Shown: positions 592-39,576 of the stretch, piece by piece
Position numbering within the stretch: position 1 is the first letter of the stretch
Layout: each line of letters opens with the position of its first letter
Source: Lepidodermella squamata
Lineage: Eukaryota; Animalia; Gastrotricha
Direction of reading: 5' to 3'
DNA: 64,000 nt
Assembly: GCA_047495785.1 (NCBI GenBank)
Contig: JBLDXI010000032.1
Span: forward strand, 1 to 64,000
Position numbers and translations under genes: made by a program
The notes under the pieces: model-generated
Told to the model about the DNA's origin: nothing
Database searches by the model: none
The model's input: only the letters and a program-made list of their open reading frames with translations

Positions 592-2944
592 TTATGCGAT
601 GACCTGTCTTATCCATTTTACGACAGAACAAACGCGGCTGTAAATGCCTGGCTTGCCGTCAGTCCCGCAAATCGACGAAGTTCCAGACGATGTGACGCCG
701 ACCAGGTGATAGCGATCGCCGACCAGGCACATCAAAGGACCGCCACTGTCGCCCACGCAGGAGTCGCGGCCGTCCGTGCCACCTGCGCACATTTCATTGG
801 GCAGCAAGTCGCCGGCAATTGGGCTGCATTTTTCGTGGGACACGTAGTTCATAGCTACATGGCGCAGCTCGTTCGGATAATTCCAGTCCCAACCAATATC
901 TAAATACAAAAATTAAACATAGAATTAATCAAAGAACATCAGTTCGAAAAAAATTAGAATAATTAAAATAATTGGTACAATTGAAGCTCGACCGCAAATT
1001 TTCCAAAAATTCCAGAAACTGAAGGGAAAGTATTTCCAAGTAGATCGCATCCTGCTGATAACCTTTTCCTTTGAGAGCGGCTTCCTAGCTATCACCGATC
1101 TCGAGATAATCGCTCAGGTGTGAAATAAGGTCAGGTCACGTGACCCACTTCACATACGAATATCTCCCTAACGGTAGGGGATAAAAATATGGGGTTTTCA
1201 AATTTTTAATCCTCGATTTTTCCTCTATCGAAATATATTTTTAGAAAAAATGTATAGATTTTCCAATGATTTGAGGAAAATGACCCAGTTTCAGACAATT
1301 CATTCACCATAAATTTCTGCTCAATGCCCAACTTTTACAAACTCAATGGTAATTTCTAAATTCAACAAAAAATTACCTTGTGAATTTATGAATTTTTTTT
1401 TATTTTTTCGAGCAAACTTACTCGCTAGCCCCCATCCAGCCGAAATGACTTGGCTGCACGAGTCTATTGTAGTCGCCTCAACCGGGTAATTATCTACAGT
1501 GTTGTCGCAAATGTTAGGATCGTCAGGCAGACAAATCGGCCGTATCGAATCGTTAGGTTCTATCGTCGCATTCAGCTCGAGTAGGGCATAATTGAAGTAG
1601 TACGGCTTTGATTTGTCGTAATTAGGATGCGCAACTACCCGCGTATAGCTCAATATGCGCTCGCCCGCATTTCGGCCTATTTCAGCGCGACTGTAACTCG
1701 ACAGTAACACGCGACTTTTAACAATAGGCCTGAAACAACAAAAGTGATAAAATTAATTAAGTAAAAGTGGACAATCATAGGCTGACCTAATTAAAAGACA
1801 ACTCGCACTTGTGAGCAGCCACTTTTTCGAGATTAACGTAGCCCCGCAGTAGTGAGCTGTATTCGGGGGCAGCCAAAATTGAAGCCTGGCCTAAAAAAAT
1901 TAAATTTCAAATCTGAAAGCATCAATAAAAAATTCTGAAAAAATCGAATTTGAGTTTAAAAATAAAATAAATAAATAAAATGAAAAATAATTTTTAACAA
2001 TTTATATTTAAATTTATTCACCATCCACGGGTAAGCGTTTTGAGGCGCCGATTTGCCGCCGAAAACCTTGTAAGCCACCGTATTTCTTGCTCCAGTTATG
2101 CCACAGTAGTCGCTCGTGCTCGACGCCGATCTCGAGTTCATCGCAACTGGCCTCGGGTCGTTGTACTGAGTCGCATCTTTCTCACCCTCGGCATCAACAT
2201 CAGCATAGGGCGCCCGATCAGGCAGCGGCTCGTCGTTCTGAATCGCGTTTTTCTTCTTATTTCGGACTGATTTAAATTGAAGTTTAGCCCGGGTTGACGT
2301 CGGCTTCTTCAACCGCGCGGTTATTTTAGGCGGATCAGGCGTGTGGAACATAATGACTTGTTGCTGAGATGAGACATTCGATGATTTTTCGACGCTGTGT
2401 GACTGCGAACCTTCTAATAAGGCCTTTTGAGCTGGTCTATAACTACTAGCATTGATTGTAATTAGCCGAATAGATGACTTCCTCGGGATAGGTGTAGTAG
2501 GCGGTTTCGTTTTGAACATCATAAAAGGATTAAGTGGAGGCCACGGTTGATCGGCTAAAATTGAAATTATTTTCCAAATTTAAATAAATTGAAAAAACTA
2601 TCACCTTTCACGCATATGCCGAGATAATCAGACCAGTAGCCATTTTTGAGGCAAACCGAGCCGATTGTGCCATCTTGTACGATGAACCCTGGATCACAGT
2701 TGATGCGCACCTGGGTGCCTACAACGACTATACTTTGCGCGACTACTAGCCTGTCCATATCGATAACAGAGCCATTACGGCCGACGCCAGGTACGATGCA
2801 CCATGAGACGAGGCGGCTCTCTAACGAGGGCGTTGTGCCCTTAGGGTTCGACGACCCTGATTGGTACTGGAATTCAGCTTCGATGGATGATATAATTAGG
2901 GTGACTAAAGCGAAAACGGCGCGTTCTATTGCTACAACGCCCAT
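592..2944 (-). CDS. Secreted CCP(sushi)-trypsin-fold serine protease homolog, catalytically inactive, 5 exons
   Basis: Signal peptide, one CCP, basic linker, K|VFGG activation site, PWM, HYCGATLI. Triad His motif reads TSASC, Asp motif reads FNYALL, DSCVGDSGGP retained. GT-AG exons at about 2944-2605, 2554-2022, 1890-1787, 1729-1422 and 899-592. Confidence 0.88.
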
Positions 2945-3549
2945 TGCATTTGCGAGATTTGCGCTAATATACTAAATTTCTAAAAAAAAAATATCAAACG
3001 GTCAATAACAAACAATTTTGTAGAGGTAATAAACAGAGATCTAAATTCATTTATAATTTGAATTGCGAAATTATATTGCAATTAAAAGAAGTAGGCTTGT
3101 TTTCCACTATCATTTTTATGCGAGATGATTAGAAGCGCGTGATAAGCCGGTGTTATTCGAGGTAATTACCGATGTTATTTTTTTCTACTATTCCCTCTTG
3201 AAGCGAGAGCCAACGAGCGCCGCTAGATCAAGGCGATATGTTTTTTGCTTAACACTTATATATGTAAGTCGTGTCTCGAGGTATATAGAGGAATACACTG
3301 TTGTTATTGTTGTATACAGGCCCGCAAAACATCATCGCTGTAATAAGAAAATTTGTTTATTTTATTCTTTTTCCTTGGCCGAGCGCTACTTTTGCGCGCA
3401 CCGTTTGCGGCTAATGACTGTGTTTTAGCAAATAAATTATTTATTAATATTTTCGAGAAAATATTCCACAGCGCGCATGTCTAATAATATATCAAAGCTG
3501 CAATGGAAATATAAGGCTAATTTTTCAAAATTGGCAAATTCCGCTAAAA

Positions 3550-3986: not shown

Positions 3987-6900
3987 TCATTTTTCCGATA
4001 AATCAGCGCTCGGCATTTTGTGATCGAGGTACAGCGATATTTTCCTATTAGTAGCGGTGTCATTTTTGAAGCTCTGAGGCTTTGCGGTCAGTGCCATTGA
4101 GGAGGCTAGGCGGGCCAGTGCTTCGCGGCTTGGCCGTTCCAGTGGCAGATCGAAGCCGTGAATCCCATTGAGAACCGCCCTAATCCAGGGCATAACTCGG
4201 CAAACCCGGCTGTAAACTCCGGGTCGGTCGGTATCGCCGCATGAAGCCGATCCAAAAGAAGTCACGCTAAAGATTAATTGTTCAAAAAAATTGTAAAAAA
4301 AAACGAATAACTTACCCAACAACGTAAGCACGGCCATCTTGGTAGCAAATCAGTGGCCCGCCGCTAGAAAAGAAAAAAATCAAAATTTGTAATACTAGCA
4401 GAATATCTTTCAGCAGAACCAAAAATTACCTATCAAAACCTTGCACCAAATATTTTTTTCGAATAATTTTTTTAATAGCATGCCTCATTCTCATAATTAT
4501 GCATGATGAGGCCCGATGTAGAAAATCACGCAAAATGTTTGAATTTTTTGTGATTAATATGATTAATATGCTAATGCCATCAGGAATAAAATTGTCTAGC
4601 CGTTGATATCCTGAATTTCTGGAAAGGAACCAGGAAATATTAATTAGGGATCCAGCAACTACATACCAGACTCGAAATATTTGAATTTAAATTCACAGAA
4701 TGACAGTTGTTTACCTATCGCCTTCACATGTATCCGGGCTGTCATGCGTGACGGGTTGAGCGCAAATTTCCGCATCAGTGATTTTGATGCCCACGTCCTT
4801 GTAACGCGTTTGACAATCAGAGTACGGCAAATAACGAAGTTCAAACCGCTTCATAATATCCGATTCCGTGTTCCCGATATCTAAATTTTGGAAAAAAATT
4901 AAAAATTTTCGTAGAAAAATGCCTCCTTAATTAAATTATTTGATTGAAAATTTTGCCTCACTTTTTGTGATTCCCCAACCAGCCGACACAAAGTGACTGC
5001 AAGAATCGACTCCAGGTATAGCCAGCCTCAAATCATTCGCATCGAGTGTCCCATTCAGCCCACCATCACACTGAAACATTTTCCCATCAGGCAGACAAAT
5101 CGCCCGAATCTGCCTCCGAAAAAACACAGGCGTATTGAGCTCAATAAGAGCGAAATCGAATTCCATCTCATCGAATTTAAAATCAGGGTGAATAAAAACC
5201 CGTTGGGCATTAACCAGCTGCCGCTCTTGACCTAATTCACTCTGAAGGGACATGTTATGCCGGCCTAAATAGACCTGAATCGCGACGATAGGGCCTAGGG
5301 TGACACAATGAGCGGCGGTTAATATGAAGCGGCGATGTATCAAAGTGCCGCCACATCGCCGAAATTCTGGATCTCCCTCGAACATAATTTCCAGTTTAGC
5401 CATCCAAGGAAATTCATGCGGCTCGGCTGTTGTCACTTCCCGTAGATTCGCGACTTCACCTTCGCCATCCATATTTAAATTAAGGTGGATAACGTCGCTA
5501 ACGCCACATTCAGTCGAGCTGAACCGCGATTGGATGGTTTCGGAGTTTTCGTTCGATTTTTTTGTAGAGGCGGCTGATTGTTTAGGTTGGCACTTTCCTA
5601 ACTCGTTTGACCAGCCGTATTTGCCGCATATTGCGTAGGAAAACCCGTTTGGCTCGAAGCCAAAATTGCATTTCAGTGATATTCTTTCGTTGTGAGCTGC
5701 GAAGATAGCCGTCAGTGATGTTACGTTCGACTTGTCCAGGGTTCCAACAACTATCTGCCCGTTTTCGATCCCGTCTGGTACGAGGCACGATCCAATCGCT
5801 GAAAAAAATAAAATGTAACAAAAAGATGAAAACATTTTAACCCTGAATTATTTTTAAAATTTCTAAATTTAAAAAAGGGAAACCCCGAACTTTTTCCTTA
5901 TAAACTGGTTTTAATATTGCTAAAAATACTGGCAGCGGTGGGGTTCGAACCCACGCCTCCGAAGAGACTAGAGCCTAAATCTAGCGCCTTAGACCACTCG
6001 GCCACGCTACCTCGTTCTTTCTATTACATCCGATAGATTTATTACATAAAACGAAATCACGCAGGATTCATTATGGCTCGAAACTCAAGATTTCATCGTT
6101 CCCATTTTATGTTTTTGATCATTTTTGTTTGAATCATTAACCAAATTTACATGGAATAAAAAGTTTGATTTTAGAGAACTTTAGAGTCCCGAAATTTGTT
6201 TCGTAATTTTCGTAATTTTCGTAGTTTTCGTAATGAATTCGAAAGTCATTTGGATTTTGTCAAGAAAGCCTATCACTTGTCAAAATTAAACTTGACGAAA
6301 CGGTGGGACTCGGTCATTAAACTAATAGGTATTTGTTTGGTTGCTTTACGGGTGTGGCGCGAACGCCGATACCCAAGTGAAATATTTTGCACCCGACTCC
6401 ACCGATGAGGCAGAGCGCAGGGGTCAGCGGACCGAAGTGCAATGGCCCGCCTCGCCCTGGGGCGACCGACTTGTTGATCTCGGTTCATCCCAGTGCCAGG
6501 TAAGTTTAGTGGCAATAGATTTAGCCATTCGACCCCATTCAACAGCCAGACACAACAATTAATCCTCACTAATTTGCATAACCACATTTTTCTGTAGTGC
6601 GAGATGATAAAAAAAAACATTGACAATTAGCAGAGCGTAGTTTCGATCTACAGACCTCTGGGTTATGGGCCCAGCGCGCTTCCACTGCGCCACTCTGCTT
6701 GTCTAAGGATTCACATAAACAAATCGAATCAAATTTTTTAAAATTCTTCCTTAATAGTTTTTCAAAAATATTATAATTTTTTTTCTTGATTTCGAGTAAA
6801 ACAGAATTTTTGTATTTTACTTACGAGTGGATTTTGGCAGACAAATGCCGAGTTCATTTGACCAAGTTCCATTCCACAGGCAAACACTTTCACTGGCTCC

Positions 6901-23427: not shown

Positions 23428-26383
23428 GCACATTTTCAGGCCCGCCTATGTTACGGCTCTACGCGCATTCTCATTGGCCCAGTGTTTCAACCAATGCGCT
23501 AGCGCGCTTATTACGCTGATTGCGCATTGTTATGATGACCGCGCGCGCACACACAACTTTCGCGCTTTTGTAATATTTACACACAACTTCAAGACAGCAC
23601 GAGAGGCGCCATTTTATTTCAGTCAAAATTCGCATTCGCATCAAGTTGAAAATCATTCATTAATAACTAAGCGCTTAGTAGTATCGAAGATGAGTGTAAA
23701 ATCAATTAAAACACATGCGAGAGCTAAAACACACAAAATCAAAAAACAGAAAATTTGAATTCAAGTAAACACACACAATTTTGATACAGCAATTTTATTA
23801 AGAGTTGAGAGCGCAATGGTTTTATTTTATTTCGCTGAATTAATTCCCAATTTTTCGCGGAAATTACGGGGTCGTATAGCATAATTCTTTGGTGCCCGGT
23901 ATCCGATGGGCTTTCTGCCGGCCCTCTGAGGGCGGGAGCCGCCGACATTGTAAAGGCGCCGGCCAACAGCCGTGCTTTGAGTGCGAATCAAGGCGCCGCG
24001 ATTGTGGCCCGTCGTCTTCGACAGGCACTTGGCCAGCCAGGATTCAGTTGAAAGCGGTCCATTTTCGGCAACAGTAACCCAACGCTGACTGAACCGGTCA
24101 ACTTGGCGTAAAAGGCCCTTATTACAGCCGTTGCGTTTCATCAGATCCTCAATTTTGCAGCACGCAGCCTTGAATCGGTCAAGCGAGGCCGCTAGGTCGA
24201 GTTCATCGTTACCAAGACAGCTGGCATCGCCTTCGTCCGGCGCCATGTCTTCGGCAATTTAATCGGAAGGGGAACTTTCGCTGCCAGTAATAATGCACGG
24301 CGGGGGTGAGCGACATGTGATGAAGCCACTAGCGGTTTGATCATCGTTATTGCTATTTATGAGTTCGGTTAAACCCAGAAAATATTGGTCTTCGTACTCG
24401 ACCCCAGTAGCAATGAAAGCCAACAGTTTCTTGACATCGACAGTGGCGATAACAAGCCGACTGGGCGGCAACGGAACGTTACTCACAGCCGCAACATCAA
24501 CCTAAAAAGTCGCAAAATTAAATTCCCAAAATGTTCGCCACAATAAAATTATAAATTTAGCCAATCTACCTTAATCTGATTAGATGAATTTGGGGACAAA
24601 TTTTACCTGATTCGTGAAAAATTAATAAATATTGTTATTCAATTTTCGAATTTTTTAATTCATTTAAATCAATTTTCCAAATATTAAAAAATCCTCCATG
24701 TTTGCAAAAAAATTATTTAAAATAAATGTTTACCAAGTGCTTGCAAAACCGGCCTTTGCTTCCGTAAGGGCAAGTGCATAGCCATGCAGATAGATTCACT
24801 GTGTAGATGGCGCCTTTTTCAGTCTTGATCTCGAAGACAGTGTTGTTGCTGCTTGTCTCCAATATTTCGGCGATGCCAGCATCCTTGTAACGGAGCCATT
24901 CCGTTTTTAAATCTTGCCGACCATTGGCGATTTCTAACAATTTTTTCGAATAAAAATCGTCGAATTTTTGGGCTAAGAAGTTCGCCAAGGCCGGTGGGTT
25001 GAATGCGCGGACGCGGCACAAAATCACATCCTTGAGTATTCCCACACACCTGAAAATGAAATTAAAAATTGAAAAAATAGGCGTCTTCTTTTTCTCAAGT
25101 AGCTTGATCTTAATTGGCAATTAATGCAACAATATAAGTATGCCAGTTGAGGCTGAAAATTAAGCAAATTTGACCTACCTTTCGACGACATTGTTAGTCA
25201 TGTGTCCATGGGAGTAGGCATTACGAAAAGCGGCGACAAACAGGCGAGACCTCTGAAGTAGGCAAAGTACGTGTAAGCGCCAGTTGATATATTTCGAAGT
25301 GAGCGGCGAATCCAGTAGAGCGCGGCGCGCTGTTTCGTATTCGTCTTGCGTTTGAGAAAAAACTAGATTCTGGAAAACTGAGAAAAAAGATATTTCCTGA
25401 CATTCTCATGAGTTCATACATACGCTGCAACAACTCGGGAGCATCTTCTGACGAAATCTTGTGCTTTTTTTCAACTAGCCAACGCCAGAGCGCTTGTAAA
25501 ATGTGAAAGGCACAAAATAGGATTGTAGCATTGACGAAAACTGATTTCAAAGCTTCTCGCTCGGCGTCGCTGTCGTCCGTTAGAAATAATTTCGGTTCGA
25601 TGCCATTCAATGCGCGCTTGAAGGTGCTGAAGGCCAATCTACAATTTCATTATTATTCATTAAGGTAGACCACATTTTTTTATGAAAATTTTATAATGGA
25701 GAGGCGCTAAATATATTTAGGTGGATTTTTCGGGGCAGCATGAGGCAAAAAAAATTCTGCTTCAAATTTTTCCTCCCGAATTTTTCTACTATTATTTACC
25801 AATTTTTTTTTTAATTTTATACATCCATTAAAATTTTAAAAAATTCTCTTATTGAATTCGTGTAACGACATTTCAGAAATTTTGCTCTTAAATGTCGCGA
25901 CAATTCAGAACACGACACTTCCGAAAATTAATTAATGATTTTTCTGAGCGTCATTTCAGAACACGAGGCGTCATTTCAGAATGAAAAACTCAGAAAACTC
26001 CTTGGAAATAATTATTCGGAAAACTCAGAAAACTCAGAAAAATATAATAATTAACTCAGAAAACTCAGAATAATTTTATTCGAGTTTCTGACTGCTGAGG
26101 TCTGACTCTGACCAGCTCTGACGCGGTGAATCGAGCGCCTAATTATGGACATTCGAAACTGTCCAAATCAGAGACCCAGCATGATTTCGGACGTCCGTAA
26201 CAGGGATGTCCGGATTCAAGTCGTGTCCAAACTCAGAGCCCACACGCCATTTTCTTTTCAGCAACATTATGTGACCACTTTAAAGGCGGGAAAAAAGCCT
26301 TTCTCCTATTGGTTCATTCAAATAAACGCGGGTGATTCAAACTGTATTTTTTATTCAAAATAAGAGCTGTTTTTTGCCTCGAG

Positions 26384-27094
26384 ATGCACGTGCGTAATAA
26401 TCAATAAAAAATCGTAAGGATTGGAAAAATCGATGGAAGCAACACATGAAAGACAAAGATATTATCTACTTGAGTGATACGCACCATGTGAAGCGCATTA
26501 TTAAGTAAGTTTAACAATAACGGAGGCACAACGCGAGAAAACCGATATCACAGGTTATATCCAGGCATTCTAGTATAAAAACAACAAAGAAACTCAACCA
26601 CACATAATTTTCAGAAGTAGCAGAAATTTTCACGGAACTGTTAGTTGAAATCCCTCAAATTTTATATAATTTTATATCATTTTATTGCCAAGTCATCAGG
26701 CTTACGGCCGATTATCATTCAAGTCGAGGTAAATGTCATAATCTGAATTTTTGATGAGCAAACTGACACTGTGTCACTACAAAAACTGAACATTGAAAGC
26801 TAGACGCCAGTCAGTAAGTCGGTGCACTACGAAATAATGGACCTGAGAGATAAATTAATCATCAAGTGAGATTTGATATAAAATGCAGATCTCTGCGCAT
26901 TTAGATAATCCTCTAATCATTTCAGACGCTCCGCCAGAAAACAGCCAGAGTATTCATTGTTTTTGATTTTTTACTTCTCTTCTAATAGATACTCTAATAC
27001 CGTAATTACTATATTCGGAAAAAATTCCTCAATTTTATATTTCAAAAATTCATATCGTTTCTAACTATCGTTTATATAGCTGTTTCTAAAATAA
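26384..27094 (+). CDS. Putative 9-micro-exon gene (~83 aa) inside the RAG1-like element
   Basis: Hand-built GT-AG model, introns 39-78 nt, phases consistent, AATAAA at 27102. Not in the ORF track; some donors are weak. Confidence 0.4.
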
Positions 27095-27191
27095 TGTCTC
27101 AAATAAAAATGAATATTTTGGCTGTTCTCCGGCAGAACGTCTCAAATTAGGTGGAAATAATTAAAATTAAATTGTCTTTTGACCGAATAAA

Positions 27192-27980
27192 TCAGCGCCT
27201 GCGGCGGGTGGCGTCAGGTACGCGACGTTCGCGGCGGTAGGCCGTCAGCTTCGTTAGTACCGCGGAATGCGAACGGGTTCCGAAGCACCGCCAAAAATCA
27301 AAATCGTCTTCAAGGGCGAAGTCGTCGATCGACTCGAACGAGATGGCATCATGCTCGCCGAGCCAGTCGAGGTAGCGATCGAACGCCGTGTATTCTGCGT
27401 CGCTGTAACGTGTTCCAGGTGCGGGAAGCCCGGATGCCCCTTTTTCGGGCCGCTTCGAACGGCGTGGCGTTGCGGCGTGCTGTTCGTCAGGGAAATGGCG
27501 ACTGGCCGGAGGGGCCGGCTGACGTTGGCTGCTGGCCAGGAGGGCGCTCAAGAAGGCCTGGTATTCCCGGGGCAATACAGGCTGGTTCGGGGGCGAAGTT
27601 GAAGTAGGCGCGGAGCCGGGTGTCGGGGCAGATCCAAGTGGCGGCGCAAACGACACACGCCCAGGTGACTTCAACACCGACTTGACTGGGGATTTGCAGG
27701 TCCTGGTCGAGTTGAAGTCGATCGTCATGTCGATTGCTGCCGGGACGGGCGGGCCAACAGATATCCGCAGCTCCGCCTGGCCGTTGATGGCGTCGACCAG
27801 CTCAGACTCCTCTGTGAGGAGAAAGTCGTCATCGCCGTCCCGGTACGACAGTGAAAAATCGCTGGTGAGGCGAAAACTGGCGCCGATTTTTCCGCGAAGA
27901 GAAACCAGCGAATCAAGTTCGGCCGCCGGAAATATAATAATTTTTGCGACGGAGCCGCAAAAAACTTTTAGCTTGACCAT
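27192..27980 (-). CDS. PB1-like domain, Pro-rich linker and C-terminal Myb/SANT-like HTH (262 aa), intronless
   Basis: VKLKV..FSLSYRDGDDDFLLTEESELVDAI (basic Lys plus acidic OPCA-like motif); RRSKR NLS-like; RYSDAEY..FW..FGTRSHSAVLTK. Confidence 0.75.
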   Translation of the reverse strand: MVKLKVFCGSVAKIIIFPAAELDSLVSLRGKIGASFRLTSDFSLSYRDGDDDFLLTEESELVDAINGQAELRISVGPPVPAAIDMTIDFNSTRTCKSPVKSVLKSPGRVSFAPPLGSAPTPGSAPTSTSPPNQPVLPREYQAFLSALLASSQRQPAPPASRHFPDEQHAATPRRSKRPEKGASGLPAPGTRYSDAEYTAFDRYLDWLGEHDAISFESIDDFALEDDFDFWRCFGTRSHSAVLTKLTAYRRERRVPDATRRRR

Positions 27981-28593
27981 ATTTTGATAAAATAAGGCGA
28001 AATTTCTAAAAAACGGCGAATATTTAAAGAATTGCAATGCAAACTAATTTAAAGATGGATTTAGAGATGATGAAGTAAGTTGAAGAGGTAAGTTAAATTT
28101 GGCGGTAGCGGAAGCGAATACGAACAGCTCCAATTGATTTAGATTCGTCCCTAATTTTTTGATCTATCAACTAACAAATGTTCAGGTACGTTGAAAGAAC
28201 TCACGTGCGATACCATCTGAGAAAAAAAGGATAATCGCTAACTAAAAACTGTCGGTTTAGGCCTGACAAGTCGCCGCAAACATCGCACATTTCTTCGTAG
28301 CTTATAACCATTCGACGGCGGATAGATCCAAATCTAATGCGAGATTTTGTGAAAAATTGATAGATGAGTAAGAAACTACCGAGAAAAATGTCTCATAAAA
28401 CTACGACGCGATGAGATAACTTCAATGCTAGCAGCGCGAGAGTTGTCCACGCGAAATCGTCGAAGCTTTCTACGGCTAGACAGAAACCTACAGAGGGCAA
28501 TTCGGATGTGGCTTATAATGTCGACGTCTTGTGTCATTATCAATAGCAATAAAATTACTAAAATCGATTTTGCGTTTAGGTATCAGGTAAAAT

Positions 28594-30769
28594 ATGGATG
28601 TACCGAATAATAATATTCCTATCGGACAAGATGTAAATGGACAACCAGCAATTTTGCGCTACACGCGGGTTATCAGGCCGAAGCTGAAGTTTGTGGGACG
28701 CAAGCCGTATTCCACGCTGTGCCGCTGGCAGAAGGTGACAAGAGCCAAGGAAGCAATTAAAGTGATACTGGACGGTGTTAAAAGCAGCGCGGCTTTTCGC
28801 CATTATTTGGGAGATCAGGAAGTGGAAAGCATGACAATGACGATGCGGCTCAAAGACGTTGGAGAAGTATCAGTTAGCGTCCCACCAGGTGAAAACGTGG
28901 AAATCACCAAAAATGATTTGTGCAACAGGTGAGTATGAGTTAGCATAAATAATATTTAAAAAAAGTATCGCAAACAGGGTCGCGGAAGAGATGGCAGATA
29001 AAATTGTTTCTTCGAGAGCGGCATTGCCAATTGCAAAAACGGTCGGAAATGAGAATATCTCGCGACGAACGCTGCGTAAAGCGCGGCGATCATTGGCAAC
29101 TATGCTAGATATACTGAAGGTCCCAAGCGGTAAATATTATGAATTATACACATTCCAGATAAAAATGTCCTTTGAGTAGATGCTGAAACTGAAAAAGGCG
29201 TTCGCATTAGCTTGCGCGAATATCTGCCGAAATGGGTGGAAATCGGTTATTTGAGCACAGAACAAATCAATGAAATACGCTTCCAAGTTGATGGCACACC
29301 CGGACGCACAGACGTCAGTGACGGTTGGGTACAAGCTACTATGTGCTTCGCTGATAAAAAAGATAAAATTGGCCTGGAAGAAGAATTCCAGATGCTCATT
29401 TATGAGGGCAAGGAAAGCTACGAGACTGCGCGCGAATATATTCGCCCAGTAGTCGACGAGGTTGTGGAATGGGTGTTGAACGGCGTGGAACATGACGGGA
29501 AAAAATACAACTTTAAATTGATACTTTGCTGCGATTATCCAATGATGGTTTGGCTATTAGCATGCGGGCATCATAGTGCTAATTTCGGCTGCTTGTTCTG
29601 CACGAAAAACTTTGTCACAGGTACAGAAGGCGAACTCAGGCGCTACGATTTGGTGGAAGATTTGTTAGCAAACTTGAATGAACGCGAACGATGCGAACTA
29701 GGCTGGCACGCCACATTTTTGCCCTTAATTCAGTTACCACCGCACCTATTTGAGATCGTGCCCTGTGACTTGCACCTCAAAATCAACATAACTGAGTGTG
29801 AACTTATAGCGGTATGATAAGACATTTGAAACAAAACAATATAATCATCATAACTTTAGATCCTGACGAAGTTACGCGAGGTGCATTTAACTACAGCCTA
29901 TGAAAACGTTGTCGCTGTTATTAAGCGCAGCAGTAAAAAGCTAACTGTCTCGACGCCAAAAGAAGCGAATCAGAAAATCGCGATAAAGCGAGCGAACCAC
30001 CACGCAACAACTGAGGTAATTTTCAAGTAATTATAAGTGAGCATGAGTGAGAACTTACAATTCGCAGGCTTTGAAGACCCTTGCAAAGAATGGATCCCTC
30101 ATGCAATACCTTGGTGAAGACTGGGAGGTCGAGATGGTTAAAGGCTTGTATGGCCGGGACATCGCAGTATTTGAAAGATGGCTGCAAAAGCATAATGTTG
30201 TTGTACGAAAAGATTGGACGCTGGATGAGGTTCGACGTAAGGCGCTGGAGAGAGGGTTTGAGGAAAAAGTATGCTAATTTGCTCTAACGATAATAGCTAG
30301 AGAATGGTCATATATCTTTGAAGAGACGGACTGACTTGCGAGCATTTTTGAACAATTGTGACGAGCTGTTGCTAAGTACGGGGCGAATTTTTGAGCGCAT
30401 CGAGAAGAACGATCTAGCTGGCGACCCAGAAGCAGATTTCGAGGTCTTTGAGCGAAAATTTGTGGCAGTTGTGGGGCACTTAACCACTTATGCACATGGT
30501 AACAGTTTAAAATGCGAAAGTCAATGATTCGTAACTATAAATTCATTCGTCTAGTCACATCAACACATGTTCTCCCCTTGTTGATGAAGGGTATCAACAT
30601 CCATGCGCTGTCGGCAGACTCAATGGAATTGCGACAAAAGCTTCTAAAGAGAATAGTGAGGATGACGTGCGCGGCACTTCCTGAATCACTACCACGTCAA
30701 GTGATGCAGGTTTATGTCATGCGCCTTCAAAAATATTGGGCGGCCAAAAAAAAAGAAACATTAAACTGA
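28594..30769 (+). CDS. RAG1-core/Transib-like DDE transposase, 7 exons, ~621 aa, open frame
   Basis: Exons 28594-28928, 28978-29129, 29180-29811, 29860-30015, 30068-30268, 30324-30498, 30555-30769 (introns 48-56 nt). Motifs in RAG1 order: GRKPY..QK.R, FQVDG, KESYET, CCDY, GCLFC, PCDLH, TTYAHVTSTHV, SADSME..K. Confidence 0.9.
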
Positions 30770-31916
30770 GAATAGTAACAATCTCAAACTGTTTATTGAA
30801 CGTTTGATTTCATGATTGTAGTTGTAAAAGTTGCAAAAGGTACCAAAGTCATGCAAGTAAAAATTGATGTGATCGACAACGATTGTCAGATTTCACAATG
30901 GCGGGTTTAACTTTCAATCCCTTACTGTTTGGCAAGTCCAGGTGGCGCCAGCTATTTCAAAATCACCAGTTGCCGCAAAATTTTCACAGTTACATATAAA
31001 GATTATGTTTTATTAGTTGAAATAAAAAAAAAATTCATTATTTCAAAAATTAAAAAATCATTGTTTGAATTTGCCGCGGTTTAGATCGCCCACCAATCAA
31101 AACCGTTTGTTGAAACCCTACTTGCGGGTGGTCACATAATGAAGAGTTAATTTTCAAAAGTTCACATTATCACTGTCCGATTTGAAAAACTTTCTGAAAT
31201 CGGAGCACCTAATTTCAGACGTCGAAAACTGGTGACTTTCATTGTTTAAATGTGTCCGGTGTATGAGGCAATGTCCGAAATTGGAGCCCACACGCCACCC
31301 TTAACGCGATTTTAGTCAGTGTTCAATTTTTCAATTTTTGAAAATTTTTTCCTCGCTAACAGTCGATTAATTAGCGCCCAGTTAGGCTTATGGAGCAGCA
31401 ATCTTTCCACCCCGCTCAGCAATCAAGGGACCGACATGGACGCTTGTTGAAGATATACGATGGCCACAAATATCGGTATTACATCGATTTTTGTTAACAC
31501 CCTAGATATTTCGCTTGCTATTAATATCTCATATTCCCGAGTCAGTGTTTGTAAAGTTCAACATAAAGAGGGGAGGCAAGGGTTTATCTAGCCTTTAAAA
31601 ATTAGGGTTGGGCAGTCGCGAAATGGGGTTAAAAATTGGCAGCTCAAAAAAGCCAAAAAAGCTCGAAATTTGGGGATACCAAATCTTGAGGGTGGTTGGG
31701 GGTAAGCTGAAGTCGGCTCGATAAACCCTTGTGGGAAGTGTAAAGAAGTTAAAAGGGCTAGCATTTTCTTCAATTTTTATCAAGACTCTTGGCTTTTTTG
31801 TCTTAGTGAATTTGTTCGAATTCAATCGAATTAAAGGGGCAGTTGATCGACGGTTTTTTATCATGACGCTCGTTATTTACTCTAACAGAAGTTTAAAATT
31901 AGAGAAGGTCTAAACA

Positions 31917-32099
31917 ATGGTTGACATTTAAGAATATGTTATCGATTTCCTAAGGTTTCTTCGCATTCGTCACGATGGATTAATGACTTGGCATTGTTGC
32001 AAGCCAAAAACTGACGGTACTAGCTGCACTGCTAAGATCACGACATCACCTGAGCCCCCGTTTGAAATCATGAAAAATGATGCTAGTTCACACGCTTAG
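31917..32099 (+). pseudogene. Degraded FLYWCH-like zinc-finger fragment
   Basis: FLRIRHDGLMTWHC..SCTAKITTSPEPPFEI parallels YIRHLRDGVVEWRC..CEARLFTRPNPPYQL at ~35750-35870; contains stops. Confidence 0.5.
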
Positions 32100-32247
32100 A
32101 TCTTGAACTAAATCCCGACAATAAAAGACACGCGTTTTCTTTCTTTGAGCTTCCAATTGATTGAGTTTCTTCGACTAAATATCAAAAAATAAACACGGTT
32201 TTTTCTTTGAATTATAATTGAATTTGGAAAATGCATAGTTTTTCATT

Positions 32248-33100
32248 ATGAAATTTTTTGCCCTTCTTGTGATTGTCGGGGCTTGCGTGATTTGGCATGA
32301 GGGCCTCATTTCCGGTTGCCACATCTGCCGAAGTACCACAGCAGTGAAGCCGGTTCGCCTTCAATGCGGACACGTATGCTGCAAGCCCTGCATTGTACAA
32401 TGGTTTAGAACAAAAGGGATTAAGCAATGTCCCTGTTGTAATAAAATCTCCAAAAAGAGAAAAATCAAGGTATAACATTATTATTTAAGATTTTGCCCAA
32501 AGTGAGTTTTGTCGATCAAGACTGTGTTTTTGTTCAACGAGCAAGACTACAACGGCGATGATACATTTGACAGCGATCCGCCTTCTCCAACTAGGCGATC
32601 AAGGTCATCGTCGTCGACTTCATCCTCATCACCTTCTCGTAGCACTGTGTCCTCCTCTGAGTCTGACAGGCCGCTGGCAGATTTCGTTGTTGAACCAGGA
32701 AGCCAGAATGTCGGTCGTGGTCGCGCGTCTGGGCGTGGCCGTGGTCGGCCAAGGGGCAGTCGGGCGACTAGGGTTGCAACGAGGGCTGCTACAGGAAGAG
32801 GCAGGGGATTGCTAGACTTCGTTCCGCCAGAGCCAGAGCGTTCAGTTACCGCCGCTCCATCATCTTTCGAACCAGGGAATTTCGAGCCTAGCCAAGAAGA
32901 AAATCGTCCTCAGACTCAGGCTTCGTTCGCAGCTGGGGCGTTTCGCGACGATCATTTACTCGGGATTGCCGCAGGGGGCTTCGACGATGATGATCTTCCG
33001 CCTCTTGATGAGGACAGAGATGATGTTTTCGCACCAAATCCTCACCCATCTAGTTTGCAACCCAGTAGGGATGACGCATTTGCTATACCGCCTATACCGC
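32248..33100 (+). CDS. C3HC4 RING-finger gene with S/R/G-rich region, truncated at 33100 (transposon-borne)
   Basis: CHIC..PVRLQCGHVCCKPCIVQW..CPCC; probable intron 32470-32520; RGRGRPR AT-hook-like motif. Broken by a foldback arm. Confidence 0.7.
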
Positions 33101-33390
33101 GTCAGAGCTGGTCAGAGTCAGACCTCAGCAGTCAGAAACTCGAATAAAATTATTCTGAGTTTTCTGAGTTAATTATTATATTTTTCTGAGTTTTCTCAGT
33201 TAATTATTATATTTTTCTGAGTTTTCTGAGTTTTCCGAATAATTATTTCCAAGGAGTTTTCTGAGTTTTTCATTCTGAAATGACGCCTCGTGTTCTGAAA
33301 TGACGCTCAGAAAAATCATTAATTAATTTTCGGAAGTGTCGTGTTCTGAATTGTCGCGACATTTAAGAGCAAAATTTCTGAAATGTCGTT

Positions 33391-34112
33391 ACACGGATAA
33401 AAAGCATGGATTTACGTGAATCACAACAGCGGAATTGTTTTTTATTACACTACTTGTTATATAGTATTGTGTTGTCCAAGATGATAGACGTGAAAAAAAC
33501 AACAACTTTGCCGTATAATATTCTGACAGAATGTACAGCGCTTTATATATATTATGCAAAACAATGTATGTATTGTTGCGATATCATTACCTTAGTTGAA
33601 AAATCCCTCACGGTCAAAACTATTTTCGTTCAGGCGCGTAAGAGTAAAACGTCTACGGCGCATGAAATCACCGCTCATAGCGCAGCACTAGCGGTGCTCA
33701 TTTTCACCGTCGATCGTAAAGAGAAGTACTAGCGGTGCTTCATTAACCGTCGAGGGAGTCAATTGAGGCTAGCAATTCAGCAATGCTAACCAAGTCGGTG
33801 CTCACTTTCACCGTCCATGACGTAGAGCATCACTAGCGGTGCAATATCACCGCACGGAGAGTCGTTCACGGGAAGCGAGCCGGCATAACTAACCTAGTCG
33901 GTGCTCATTTTCACCGTCGGATGCGTTTCCAACCAGAGTACTCAGCCGTGCGGAGAACACCGTCGCTAAAAGAAGCCGCAGTGACTGCTTCTGCTAATAC
34001 CAGTTCAGCGGTGCATGAAATTACGATTCGAGAAAAAAGTGCCGTTTTCTATATGGACTACTGGGTTCTAATGTAAGTACCTACGGTGTTTCGTTCGGGT
34101 TGTTTTTCCGCG
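33391..34112. mobile_element. Non-autonomous CACTA/CMC-like MITE with GCGGTG..CACCGT sub-repeats
   Basis: Ends CACGGATAAAAA and TGTTTTTCCGCG (imperfect IR); repeated GCGGTGCTCATTTTCACCGTC units at 33690-33965. Confidence 0.4.
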
Positions 34113-35570: not shown

Positions 35571-36316
35571 CTAGTTCAGCATCGCGCAGGAAATTGACAT
35601 ATGTCCTTGGTGCGAGTGAAGCCTGACTGCCTTCATCTCGAAAGTCGCTCGGGATGATACATCTGACCGAGCTGCACGAGCAATCGCTTGCTCTGGAGTT
35701 GGCTGCACATGATTGTGCTGTCGAAGACTCGGAGGGTTTCGACCCTCAATAAGCTGATAAGGAGGATTTGGCCTGGTAAAAAGCCTTGCTTCGCACTCAT
35801 ACGGATGGCTCCGTTCTGTGCATCTCCACTCAACTACACCGTCTCGCAGATGTCTTATGTAGCGATATTTGCAGTTTTCGAATATGCGCAACGGCTGACC
35901 TCGCTGTGACAACTGAATATTTGGAACTGCTTGCCAGTCTCTTGGCTGCATTGGATTCCGCAGGTTCTGGGTGGATTCACTATTAAGACCGGGCCTTCGG
36001 ACTGACCGAGCCGCCTGCTGAGACAAATGTTCTTGAACACTGAGGCTTGAGCTGATCCGAGAGCGGGGCATACCGCGGCCTCTATCAACCCCCAGGACAC
36101 TATTTAACAAGCTGTAGAGCTCGGAGACTACGTGATAATTTGGATAATTTGGATCAATTCCGTCATGCATAAACCCCGATGACGGCGGATTCTGAGCGAA
36201 GCTCGGCTGGAAACCGGACGATGGCGGTATAGGCGGTATAGCAAATGCGTCATCCCTACTGGGTTGCAAACTAGATGGGTGAGGATTTGGTGCGAAAACA
36301 TCATCTCTGTCCTCAT
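35571..36316 (-). pseudogene. Inverted continuation of the RING gene carrying a FLYWCH zinc finger
   Basis: 36224-36316 is an exact 93-bp inverted copy of 33008-33100; the frame continues into SQRGQP..YRY..WRC..CEARL..HNH. Confidence 0.75.
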
Positions 36317-37234
36317 GTCTGTCATCTCTGTCTCGTGGTTTCACTTTCGGCTGAAAAACCGATTGTCGAAGGCTGATGTCGAGCAGATCAAGGCGCAGAT
36401 CACGCGCACAGATGGTCAGTGATGGTGGGACCTTTTCTCCGAAAAAGAAAATGAAAATTGAGTTGCAGTTCCAAATCCGAGATATCGAATCCAGAGCTGA
36501 GCTCGAAACGGCGCCAAGATCCGAGTCGCCAGTGGAATCACTGCCTGAATCGCCCAGATCGGAATCTAACTTTCGAATCTATCAAGTAATTATGGTTCTC
36601 CAGGACGAGAAATTGTGGAAGAAGCAAGTCAATGAAAGCTCGATGCCGGTGTGATAGTCAGTCGATTCTCACCATTTCCTTGGATCGTCGCGTTATTCCA
36701 TTACCTTTAGTCTTTATTGTTTATTGTGGTATTGGCCAGCACCAACATTTACTCTTGTGACATTTTTTGAATAGTTCTGGTAAAAAAGATATAATTATCT
36801 GCCCAACTCACGATAAAGTGCTGAAAATTCTGAAATAAATGCGCAAGTAATACAAATTAATTGCGCAAGTGGCAGATGCGCAAGCGAGAAATGCGCAAGT
36901 GGGGGCAACCCTATTTTTCTGAGTTTTCTCAGTTACTTATTATATTTTTCTGAGTTTTCTGAGTTTTCCGAATAATTATTTCCAAGGAGTTTTCTGAGTT
37001 TTTCATTCTGAAATGACGCCTCGTGTTCTGAAATGACGCTCAGAAAAATCATTAATTAATTTTCGGAAGTGTCGTGTTCTGAATTGTTCTGAAATTGTTC
37101 TGAAATTTAAGAGCAAAATTTCTGAAATGTCGTTACACGAATTATTTCAGAGTTTCGATAAATAATTTGAAAAATATTCGGAGTTTTCGGAGTTTTCGGA
37201 GTTAATTAAAATAATAATAATAAATAATTTTCTG

Positions 37235-37951: not shown

Positions 37952-39576
37952 ATTTTCTGAGTTATACGATTCTGAAATGACGCGTTGAGTACTGAAATGT
38001 CGCTAAAATAAAAATTATTTTAATTTTCTGAAATGTCGCGTTCTGAAATTCTGAAATGTCGATTTCTGAAATGTCTCTACTGAAATGACGTAGATCCATT
38101 GAATTTATATTTAAAATAAATCACAAATTAATAAAATCAACGTACTTATAGCAGTCAGTGGTCTGAGAAGAGTGAATGATGGCAGCAACAGGCAAAGCAC
38201 CAGCCGATGAGGCCGTTACCATCAGAGTCAATGAGCTGTTGATTAAATCGCAACTTGCAGTCGAGTCGACAAACAAAACGTCTCGCGCGTCCGTAATCTT
38301 GTCGAAAACTCGCTGCATGAGGGCCGTCCTCACCATGAGGCACCAGTTCAGCTCGCCGTCTTTTCCGCGCGACTCGCGATATGTGAATATGCTCGGCTGA
38401 TTCTCAGAAAGTTCTTTCAACTTTGCTCGCATCAAATCGCCGTTTCGGTCGCCGTGCGTTTCGAGCTGGACTCGATTGGCAAAGTGGTACCAGTCTTGTT
38501 TTGTCGGACACACTGAGCGATCGGCCGATAGCAGCAGCCACGCTATATCCGGATTCAATGACTCCAATTCGTTGTTGTAGGCTTGCCGAGCCGCTGCTGC
38601 ACTGCCCTCAGCAACTAAATGACGCATCATCGCGTCTTCAACGCCGGGTGCCCAGCTCCGCCAGCGCAACGCGGCTAAAACAGCGATATTATGATTGTGA
38701 TGCCAATTTATCTTGATTGTTGTGGGGTGGCTTGTTAGCAGCGGATTTCGCTGGAGACGTTTCGCAGCTGCTTTTTGACTCGGTCCGGCGCCATCATCGA
38801 CAACGGGCGCCGCCTCAGTAAGAGTGATTGAGGCCTTGCAGTCGGTAATTCTGCTCTTCGGAGGAGCACCGCTAGCCGTTACCCTGCGTTTTTGCGCCAT
38901 TTCACCTGGAGCAGCGAGTTTCTTCCGCGATTCGTGTTCGCCACTTTCATCATCCGCATGACGACAAACAAGCTCCTCCTTAGCGACGAGCCGCTTTCCA
39001 AGTGGCTGCTTGGTACCATGCGGGGCCTGTTTTAAATCGAGGCGGTTGAGTCGCTTTAACGCGCCGATGAAATCACCCCATTCATTCGATCGGAAGGGTG
39101 CGCGCAAAACGAGAGACCATGAGTGATCATTTTTCGCGTCGAACTCGTCAACAATATACATTAACCGATGCCGATCCTCGGGCAACACGGCTTGAACAGC
39201 TGGCGGTAAATCGTGTATACGCTTGGACATGATTGCGATTTTATTAGTTGCAAAGTTTAGGGCAGTTTTCATTTCTTTCTTTCCGTCATTTCAAGTCAAA
39301 CTTGGCGCCAAAATTTGAATTTTAAATGGCGCGAATATATAGCCGAGACCATAGCCGTGGCGGTGCGGCCAGTACCTGCCGGCATAAGACGCGCGGCCAC
39401 TGAGCATGTAATTATACCCGCGCCTTTTTCACCTCGCGGGGCGTGCGCGCGCCTTGAGACTAAAAAGGCGCGCGCGCGATTACGCGGTGTGGCCGAGCGC
39501 GCTAGCGCATTGGTTGAAACACTGGGCCAATGAGAATGCGCGTAGAGCCGTAACATAGGCGGGCCTGAAAATGTGC

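Follow-up and report, generated by a model that had tools for sequence, protein, structure and literature searches.

An apparent two-gene DNA transposon from a rare lineage of the CMCT clade, with an orphan second gene, in the gastrotrich Lepidodermella squamata

Background

Is a transposon that carries the catalytic and zinc-binding residues of RAG1 in the right order, together with a second gene, a special relative of the antibody-gene recombinase, or does it merely display the features of the wider clade of transposons that gave rise to RAG1? The question is raised by a 4.9-kb element at positions 26265-31141 in the first 64,000 nucleotides of contig JBLDXI010000032.1 (assembly GCA_047495785.1) of the gastrotrich Lepidodermella squamata, a stretch that was analysed as a whole and is called the window hereafter. 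An initial annotation, made from the sequence alone, had described this element as an intact RAG1-like transposon with a PB1-Myb partner gene instead of RAG2. Our analysis leads to a different emphasis: the element appears to represent a family that is rare and new but of a kind already known, furnished with an orphan second gene, and not a special relative of the recombinase. With a probability of about 0.72, we regard 26265-31141 as an autonomous-type cut-and-paste transposon of the CMCT clade, which inserted in another repeat and in which a divergent gene encoding 262 amino acids (aa) is a lineage-specific addition.

The CMCT clade comprises the transposases of EnSpm, Mirage, Chapaev, Transib, RAG1 and others, which have in common two D, one E, two C and three H residues (Kojima 2025, PMC12730594). 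Its members also share CA..TG termini and target-site duplications (TSDs) of 2-5 bp (PMC12730594). Within this clade the CACTA/En-Spm, Mirage and Chapaev elements are referred to below as the CMC group.

Boundaries of the element

The ends of the element are defined by the following features:

26265-26278, plus strand: left terminal inverted repeat (TIR) CATTATGTGACCAC, the 5'-CA... end; perfect 14-bp inverted repeat with 31128-31141
31128-31141, plus strand: right TIR GTGGTCACATAATG, the ...TG-3' end; perfect complement of the left TIR
26263-26264 (left copy) and 31142-31143 (right copy), no strand: AA, a possible 2-bp TSD, read from the sequence

The exact pair CATTATGTGACCAC / GTGGTCACATAATG bounds the 4.9-kb unit just as the initial annotation had placed it. 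It is the sole perfect 14-mer inverted pair of the region, and the window contains no further exact copy of the repeat. Taken alone, the pair is suggestive and only modestly unlikely by chance; when the region was simulated 400 times with a Markov model, 14 runs (3.5%) produced a perfect 14-bp pair at least 3 kb apart. We accept the TIR as the true boundary because it brackets both genes exactly, because it gives termini of the 5'-CA...TG-3' type (CATTATG...CATAATG), in keeping with the rule of the CMCT clade, and because the DNA next to it is related at the two ends. The roughly 100 nt inside each TIR align with a score of 13 (against 3.8 +/- 2.1; 13 was reached by 3 of 1000 shuffles), and the likeness includes a CGCGG...ATTCAAAC block that lies equally far from both ends.

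The flanks read ...CAGCAA / element / AAGAG..., and their terminal 5-bp segments, AGCAA and AAGAG, differ. There is no 3-bp or 5-bp flanking duplication, the shared bases being AA only, which at this one insertion fits a 2-bp TSD. An empty site was sought in the 64-kb window and none was found.

The transposase gene and its conserved residues

One of the two genes within these bounds encodes the transposase:

28594-30769, plus strand: transposase gene, 7 exons, 621 aa (gene model; four junctions bridged by relatives)
28594-28928, 28978-29129, 29180-29811, 29860-30015, 30068-30268, 30324-30498 and 30555-30769, plus strand: the exons
29182-29811, plus strand: exon 3 (aa 164-373), with the pre-RNase-H region, the RNase-H-fold strands and the CxxC region (predicted model)
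29290-29292 (D200), 29533-29535 (D281), 29590-29601 (C300/C303) and 29773-29775 (H361), plus strand: residues of exon 3
30495-30628, plus strand: C-terminal catalytic motifs, with H550 at 30495-30497, H555 at 30566-30568 and E575 at 30626-30628

The exons add up to 1866 nt in frame, that is, 621 aa plus the stop codon, and are separated by six GT-AG introns of 48-56 bp. The introns have a GC content of 29%, compared with 0.54/0.36/0.49 at the three codon positions of the gene. Four of the six junctions (aa 163, 373/374, 492/493 and 551) lie within unbroken tblastn alignments to related contigs, whereas the junctions at aa 112 and 425/426 have the support of frame and splice signals only. The spliced gene with its six junctions thus holds up as first described, and so does the series of motifs, all of which are present in the order originally listed.

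The conserved residues follow each other as D200, D281, C300-x2-C303, H361, H550-x4-H555 and E575, which is the CMCT set D, D, CxxC, H, HxxxxH, E; relatives within the clade conserve these motifs. The last three fall within TYAH-VTSTH ... LSADSME, a block that is split by intron 6 and is conserved in relatives on three related contigs (L006, L012 and L015) in the form TTY(A/S)HLL..H ... LSAE(N/S)IE. As the residue set is common to the whole clade, the list of motifs identifies the CMCT clade and not RAG1. A further motif, GRKPY, had been compared to the nonamer-binding region of RAG1; this comparison goes too far, as the motif sits in an N-terminus that is common to no relative. When a PB1 or DNA-binding domain was sought in that N-terminus, only a chance-level coiled-coil match emerged; exons 1-2 gave no zinc-finger or RING match in Pfam, and the first 164 aa contain only 2 Cys.

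Taken with the partner described next, the element has its TIRs, both reading frames and its catalytic and zinc residues in place. In this sense it is an intact-looking two-gene DNA transposon, as had been proposed, and it may possibly have been active recently.

The divergent partner gene

The second gene and the DNA between the two genes comprise the following:

27192-27980, minus strand: partner open reading frame (ORF), 262 aa plus stop, ATG start (27980 down to 27195; stop codon 27192-27194), as read
about 27711-27980, minus strand: PB1-like N-terminus, aa 1-90 (weak Pfam and PDB matches)
27216-27413, minus strand: helical acidic/basic C-terminus, aa 190-255 (low-confidence model)
27981-28593, no strand: AT-rich spacer of 613 bp between the divergent start codons (position only)

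The partner ORF lies inside the TIRs and head-to-head with the transposase gene, in agreement with the initial annotation. The spacer is presumed to be a bidirectional promoter region; a bacterial-type promoter scan of it was uninformative.

The N-terminus of the partner matches Pfam PB1 with an E-value of 0.0026 (18.1 bits, under the cut-off of 23.6), and among PDB sequences the partner aligns best with the PB1 domain of plant NBR1 (E 0.026), over SLSYRDGDDDFLLTEESELVDA, with its OPCA-like acidic YRDGDDDF. A single-sequence AlphaFold model (pLDDT 42) has the order beta-beta-alpha-beta-beta-alpha-beta-beta, then a long coil, then 3-4 helices, and the middle of the protein is Pro/Ser/Ala-rich. 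These matches make a PB1-like N-terminal domain probable, so that one half of the PB1-Myb designation remains plausible. The other half falls away: for Myb there is neither a homologue in support nor any Pfam match at E<=10 save an irrelevant one at 0.15. Kelch repeats are likewise absent from the protein. A search of 5.8 billion proteins with the whole partner and with its C-terminal 83 aa retrieved no homologue. Nor were the partner, a PB1 domain or the TIR found at 16 related loci, which lie on ten distinct metagenome contigs, though the absence of the partner is weak evidence, since most of these contigs measure 0.7-3.7 kb and their transposases are 27-37% identical to that of the element (tblastn).

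There is a substantial possibility, if one short of even odds, that the 262-aa ORF is no transposition factor but GC-rich sequence that was captured or arose by chance, and would be cargo or a frame without function. Its GC content of 56-64%, compared with about 42% elsewhere in the element, is similar at the three codon positions (0.62/0.53/0.66); its product is rich in Ser, Ala, Pro and Arg; several overlapping ORFs run in other frames; and the missing homologues, the absence from every related contig and the poor AlphaFold model all accord with such an origin. However, a 262-codon open frame is unlikely to arise by chance even at 62% GC (by our own estimate, about 4e-4 per frame). The two weak PB1 matches are independent, fall on the same stretch and are accompanied by the OPCA-like motif and a fitting order of strands and helices, and the frame begins with an ATG, within the TIRs and opposite the transposase gene. 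On balance we consider the partner likely to be a real gene, while that it takes part in transposition is unproven; since no relative carries the partner, an accessory function like that of RAG2 is conjecture. A still bolder proposal would make the PB1-like protein an obligate second subunit of the transposase, functionally comparable to RAG2 or TnpA and using PB1 oligomerisation to assemble the transpososome or to target it, and would have the animal host several independent CMCT lineages, each with its own recruited partner. This we judge improbable.

Fold and sequence kin of the transposase

Structural modelling was applied to exon 3 only (aa 164-373), using AlphaFold with a 34-row alignment. 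The resulting model (pLDDT 81.7, pTM 0.78) has the strand-strand-strand-helix-strand-helix order of the RNase-H fold, in which D200 closes strand 1 and D281 comes directly after strand 4. A Foldseek search with this model placed RAG1 at the top (E 1e-4, residues 535-806), followed by BbRAGL and HzTransib, and a separate pass over 48,161 representative chains returned the same six top rows with the same gap. The predicted structure thus shows a RAG1/Transib-type catalytic fold for the N-terminal half of the core, and to this extent the comparison with RAG1 made in the initial annotation is sustained. No CMC-family structure was returned by the fold searches of the PDB, and we know of no CMC transposase structure that has been solved. 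As CMC structures are absent from the results, a top match to RAG1 and Transib is expected for any CMCT protein, and the fold cannot separate Transib from CMC.

At the sequence level every exon was searched, and none has a Pfam match at a meaningful level or a PDB match at E<=10, including to RAG1, HzTransib and BbRAGL. Family profiles of the close relatives and of a CMC-like group, described below, also failed to retrieve RAG1, HzTransib or BbRAGL from the PDB sequences at E<=10, and neither the protein nor any of its relatives matches Pfam RAG1 (PF12940). A phmmer search with exon 3 over 1.84 billion representative proteins returned 34 matches, reaching CMC-like proteins at 5e-7 from the single sequence. 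Two of the matches are spurious: the top one (P0001, 954 aa) is a tandem-repeat protein with only a 22-residue stretch in common, and another (P0029) is a Calx-beta repeat protein. The former is built of about 14 tandem units of 66 aa, each with NERERCEIKW, 56% identical to exon 3 residues 159-180 (NERERCELGW...), and may represent a satellite that originated from part of a related transposase.

The close relatives are few. Six of them (P0002-P0005, P0008 and P0009) are 31-35% identical in alignment A3 and four more (P0040-P0043) were added by a profile search; together they amount to only about ten unannotated fragments, all from anonymous metagenome or Logan contigs. The distant relatives, which form the CMC-like group, are proteins of 580-750 aa, one of which, from a firefly, is annotated as a DUF4218-domain protein. 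They have sub-threshold Pfam matches to Transposase_21, DUF1258, DUF1280 and DUF4218, and never to RAG1; the first three of these models correspond to CACTA, Mirage and Chapaev, respectively (Majorek et al. 2014, PMC3985635). Profiles of the close clade and of the CMC-like group align with each other in hhalign with a probability of 98.7% (E 3.4e-16) over 176 columns, in which the CxxC, the D..H motif and the two D residues are in register. The close clade itself has marginal Pfam matches only (DUF1280, E 0.037; Transposase_21, E 0.17) and none of its members reaches any Pfam CMC model, so that the link to CMC runs through a group whose own matches are sub-threshold. These relationships suggest that the transposase belongs to a rare, unnamed lineage, the nearest detectable kin of which are CMC-like rather than Transib or RAG1.

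A 7.1-kb metagenome contig (L006; ERZ27332993 k141_1182868) carries at 1233-3167, on the minus strand, an intact CMC-like ORF of 644 aa with DG, CxxC and H...H motifs, and on its other strand the best full-length relative of the transposase. As both genes are present on this contig, two CMCT lineages occur side by side in one eukaryote.

Could the element nevertheless be a true member, or the sister, of the Transib/RAG lineage, with a PB1 protein in the place of the RAG2L of ProtoRAG? RAG1, BbRAGL and HzTransib are its best and only strong structural matches; the two histidines are spaced H(4)H, in line with the RAG1 residues listed in the initial annotation and in contrast to the H(3)H of the CMC-like group; a single base separates the terminus CATTATG from a CAC-type heptamer; and Transib relatives with short TSDs have been described (bioRxiv 10.64898/2026.08.26.747230). 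We nonetheless think it unlikely. The top fold match is, as noted, what any CMCT protein would produce, the spacing of the two histidines varies inside the clade (the relative on L015 has H(3)H), and a 5-bp TSD is absent. RAG1, Transib and BbRAGL stay out of reach of both sequence and profile at E<=10, and the relatives are devoid of Pfam RAG1, while phmmer detects CMC-like proteins when run on a much larger database. The choice between Transib and CMC is not settled by the TSD, because both TSD and terminal bases vary within Transib; it is the sequence evidence that carries weight. Of the proposed kinship with RAG1 and Transib, the fold is sustained and so is the pattern D, D, CxxC, H, HxxxxH, E; a specific tie goes too far, given the clade-wide distribution of that pattern, the CMC-like kin, and the lack of a sequence match, a 5-bp TSD and a CAC heptamer.

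Insertion into an outer repeat

The element is itself enclosed by a longer inverted repeat:

25859-26127, plus strand: left arm of the outer inverted repeat, beginning CGTGTAACGAC; 98-99% match to 33096-33395
33096-33395, minus strand: right arm of the outer inverted repeat; 98-99% match to the left arm
36912-37143: third arm copy, beginning at the same base, with a weaker partial match at 37953-38057 (81%)

The arms, of about 270 bp, are 98-99% complementary except for one extra 31-bp unit, and the CMCT element lies 137 bp inside the left one. Since all three arm copies start at the same base (CGTGTAACGAC...) and the DNA outside them is unrelated, the arms are the ends of a different repeat family. 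The end of this family, CGTGTAACGACATTTCAG..., is sharp, and its interior contains tandem units of 9, 22 and 31 bp of the AACTCAGAA type; no flanking duplication is visible at the outer arms, and the third copy diverges before the insertion point. On either side of the insertion, 26128-26264 and 31142-31300 are made up of a unit of about 120 bp (...AATCGAGCGCCTAATT...GTCCAAACTCAGAGCCCACACGCCA) in diverged copies, and the element landed in the spacer between two tandem units. A nested insertion of the CMCT element into the outer repeat is the simplest reading, and its nested position is an indirect sign that it once moved.

That the mobile unit is instead the whole 7.5 kb from 25859 to 33395, with the 14-bp repeat internal to it, is very improbable: the 98-99% arms do enclose the element along with two further ORFs, one for a RING finger and one Ser/Arg-rich, and the perfect 14-bp pair alone has the 3.5% frequency in simulations given above, but the arm copies at 36912-37143 and 37953-38057 (81%) stand without a transposase nearby and mark an independent repeat, the outer ends (CGTGTAACG...) are unlike the CA...TG ends of CMCT elements and have no flanking duplication, whereas CA...TG termini, AA flanks and subterminal DNA that matches are all found at the inner ends, and a nested insertion accounts for all observations.

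The RING-finger ORF (75 aa; 32248-32475, plus strand) has a hydrophobic N-terminus and a Pfam zf-C3HC4 match of 28.2 bits, above the cut-off. It is followed by the GC-rich ORF of 212 aa (32509-33147, plus strand), which is rich in Ser, Arg and Gly and extends into the right arm; the two may be one spliced gene of the outer element. At the end of the second ORF, 93 bp (33008-33100) recur with 100% identity and in inverted orientation at 36224-36316, in the initial part of a minus-strand ORF of 257 aa (35571-36344) with a sub-threshold match to the FLYWCH zinc finger; this identity suggests that DNA was duplicated locally not long ago or that the outer element is present in a second copy. Elsewhere, tRNA-Leu(TAG) and tRNA-Met(CAT) genes occur at 5930-6011 and 6628-6699 on the minus strand, beside trypsin-like and sushi-domain ORFs, and the genes of the window include trypsin, sushi, ankyrin and FLYWCH types.

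Points that weigh against this interpretation

Several observations count against the picture of an autonomous CMCT transposon with an added gene. The shared AA of the flanks, seen at one insertion in AT-rich DNA, could be due to chance and is weak evidence; a single copy is seen in the window, and both the 2-bp TSD and mobility are unproven. The statement that the transposase is closer to CMC than to Transib rests on relative detectability and on the sub-threshold Pfam matches of the intermediates; moreover, Transib relatives with TSDs of 2-3 bp exist (bioRxiv 10.64898/2026.08.26.747230). As the core was modelled from exon 3 only, the C-terminal H..H/E assignment relies on the pattern of motifs, and the putative equivalence of H550/H555/E575 to the HxxxH...E of CMC-like proteins on their order, the hhalign comparison of these motifs with the CMC-like group being not significant (E 0.15-0.45). 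Finally, the partner, with its deviant GC, its lack of a homologue and its absence from related contigs, could be cargo or a non-functional ORF.

A possible mechanism of transposition

In the reading preferred here, the transposase has an RNase-H-fold DDE core (D200, D281, E575) with a zinc module formed by C300, C303, H550 and H555 and the conserved H361, arranged as in RAG1/Transib. By analogy with the solved RAG1 and Transib complexes, a dimer may bind the CATTATG... ends and the related subterminal DNA, nick the DNA and free the element by forming hairpins on the flanks, with subsequent reintegration at a short stagger, which would be 2 bp if the AA is a TSD. In the partner, a PB1-type interaction domain is probably joined by a disordered linker to a small tail of helices. 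Speculatively, the partner would most likely serve as an adaptor acting through the PB1-like domain or as a DNA-binding helper acting through the helical tail, following a logic like that of TnpA in En/Spm.

Evolutionary significance

With this element, the group of transposons from which RAG1 arose gains a lineage that is rare and unannotated. The element leaves the picture of RAG origins unchanged, because its RAG1-like features belong to the clade as a whole. Should the partner prove necessary for transposition, the element would offer a tractable comparison for how RAG1-type enzymes gain accessory subunits, and if the partner were indeed an obligate subunit, one of several recruited independently by CMCT lineages in this animal, this would bear on the origin of the RAG1-RAG2 pair. 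If confirmed, a CMCT element of an animal with a PB1-like gene apart from that of the transposase would be new.

Comparison with known systems

The element resembles the CMC group in its CA...TG ends and in a possible TSD within the short (2-4 bp) range, and its nearest kin carry weak matches to Transposase_21, DUF1258 and DUF1280; it differs in that its terminus is CAT, whereas that of CMC is CAC. En/Spm also encodes a second protein, TnpA in addition to TnpD. In contrast, the second gene of the element is separate, divergent and PB1-like, and has no similarity to TnpA. Chapaev-type transposases have a Chapa zinc-finger or RING N-terminus (PMC4411706), neither of which is found in the element. 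PB1 domains have been associated with MULE sequences in the PB1-MULEs of plants (PMC4948706). These are, like the element, DNA transposons with a PB1 domain, but they belong to the Mutator superfamily and to plants, whereas the element is a CMCT transposon of an animal and its PB1-like domain, with sub-threshold matches, resides in a separate ORF.

With Transib, RAG1 and ProtoRAG the element shares the order of its catalytic and zinc residues. Unlike Transib and RAG1, it has no sequence-level match to them, no 5-bp TSD and no CAC heptamer, and, unlike the nonamer-binding region of RAG1, the N-terminal motif likened to it is not conserved in the relatives of the element. A two-gene layout is common to the element and ProtoRAG (BbRAG1L), but the partner in ProtoRAG is convergent and kelch/RAG2-like, whereas that of the element is divergent and of a non-kelch type.

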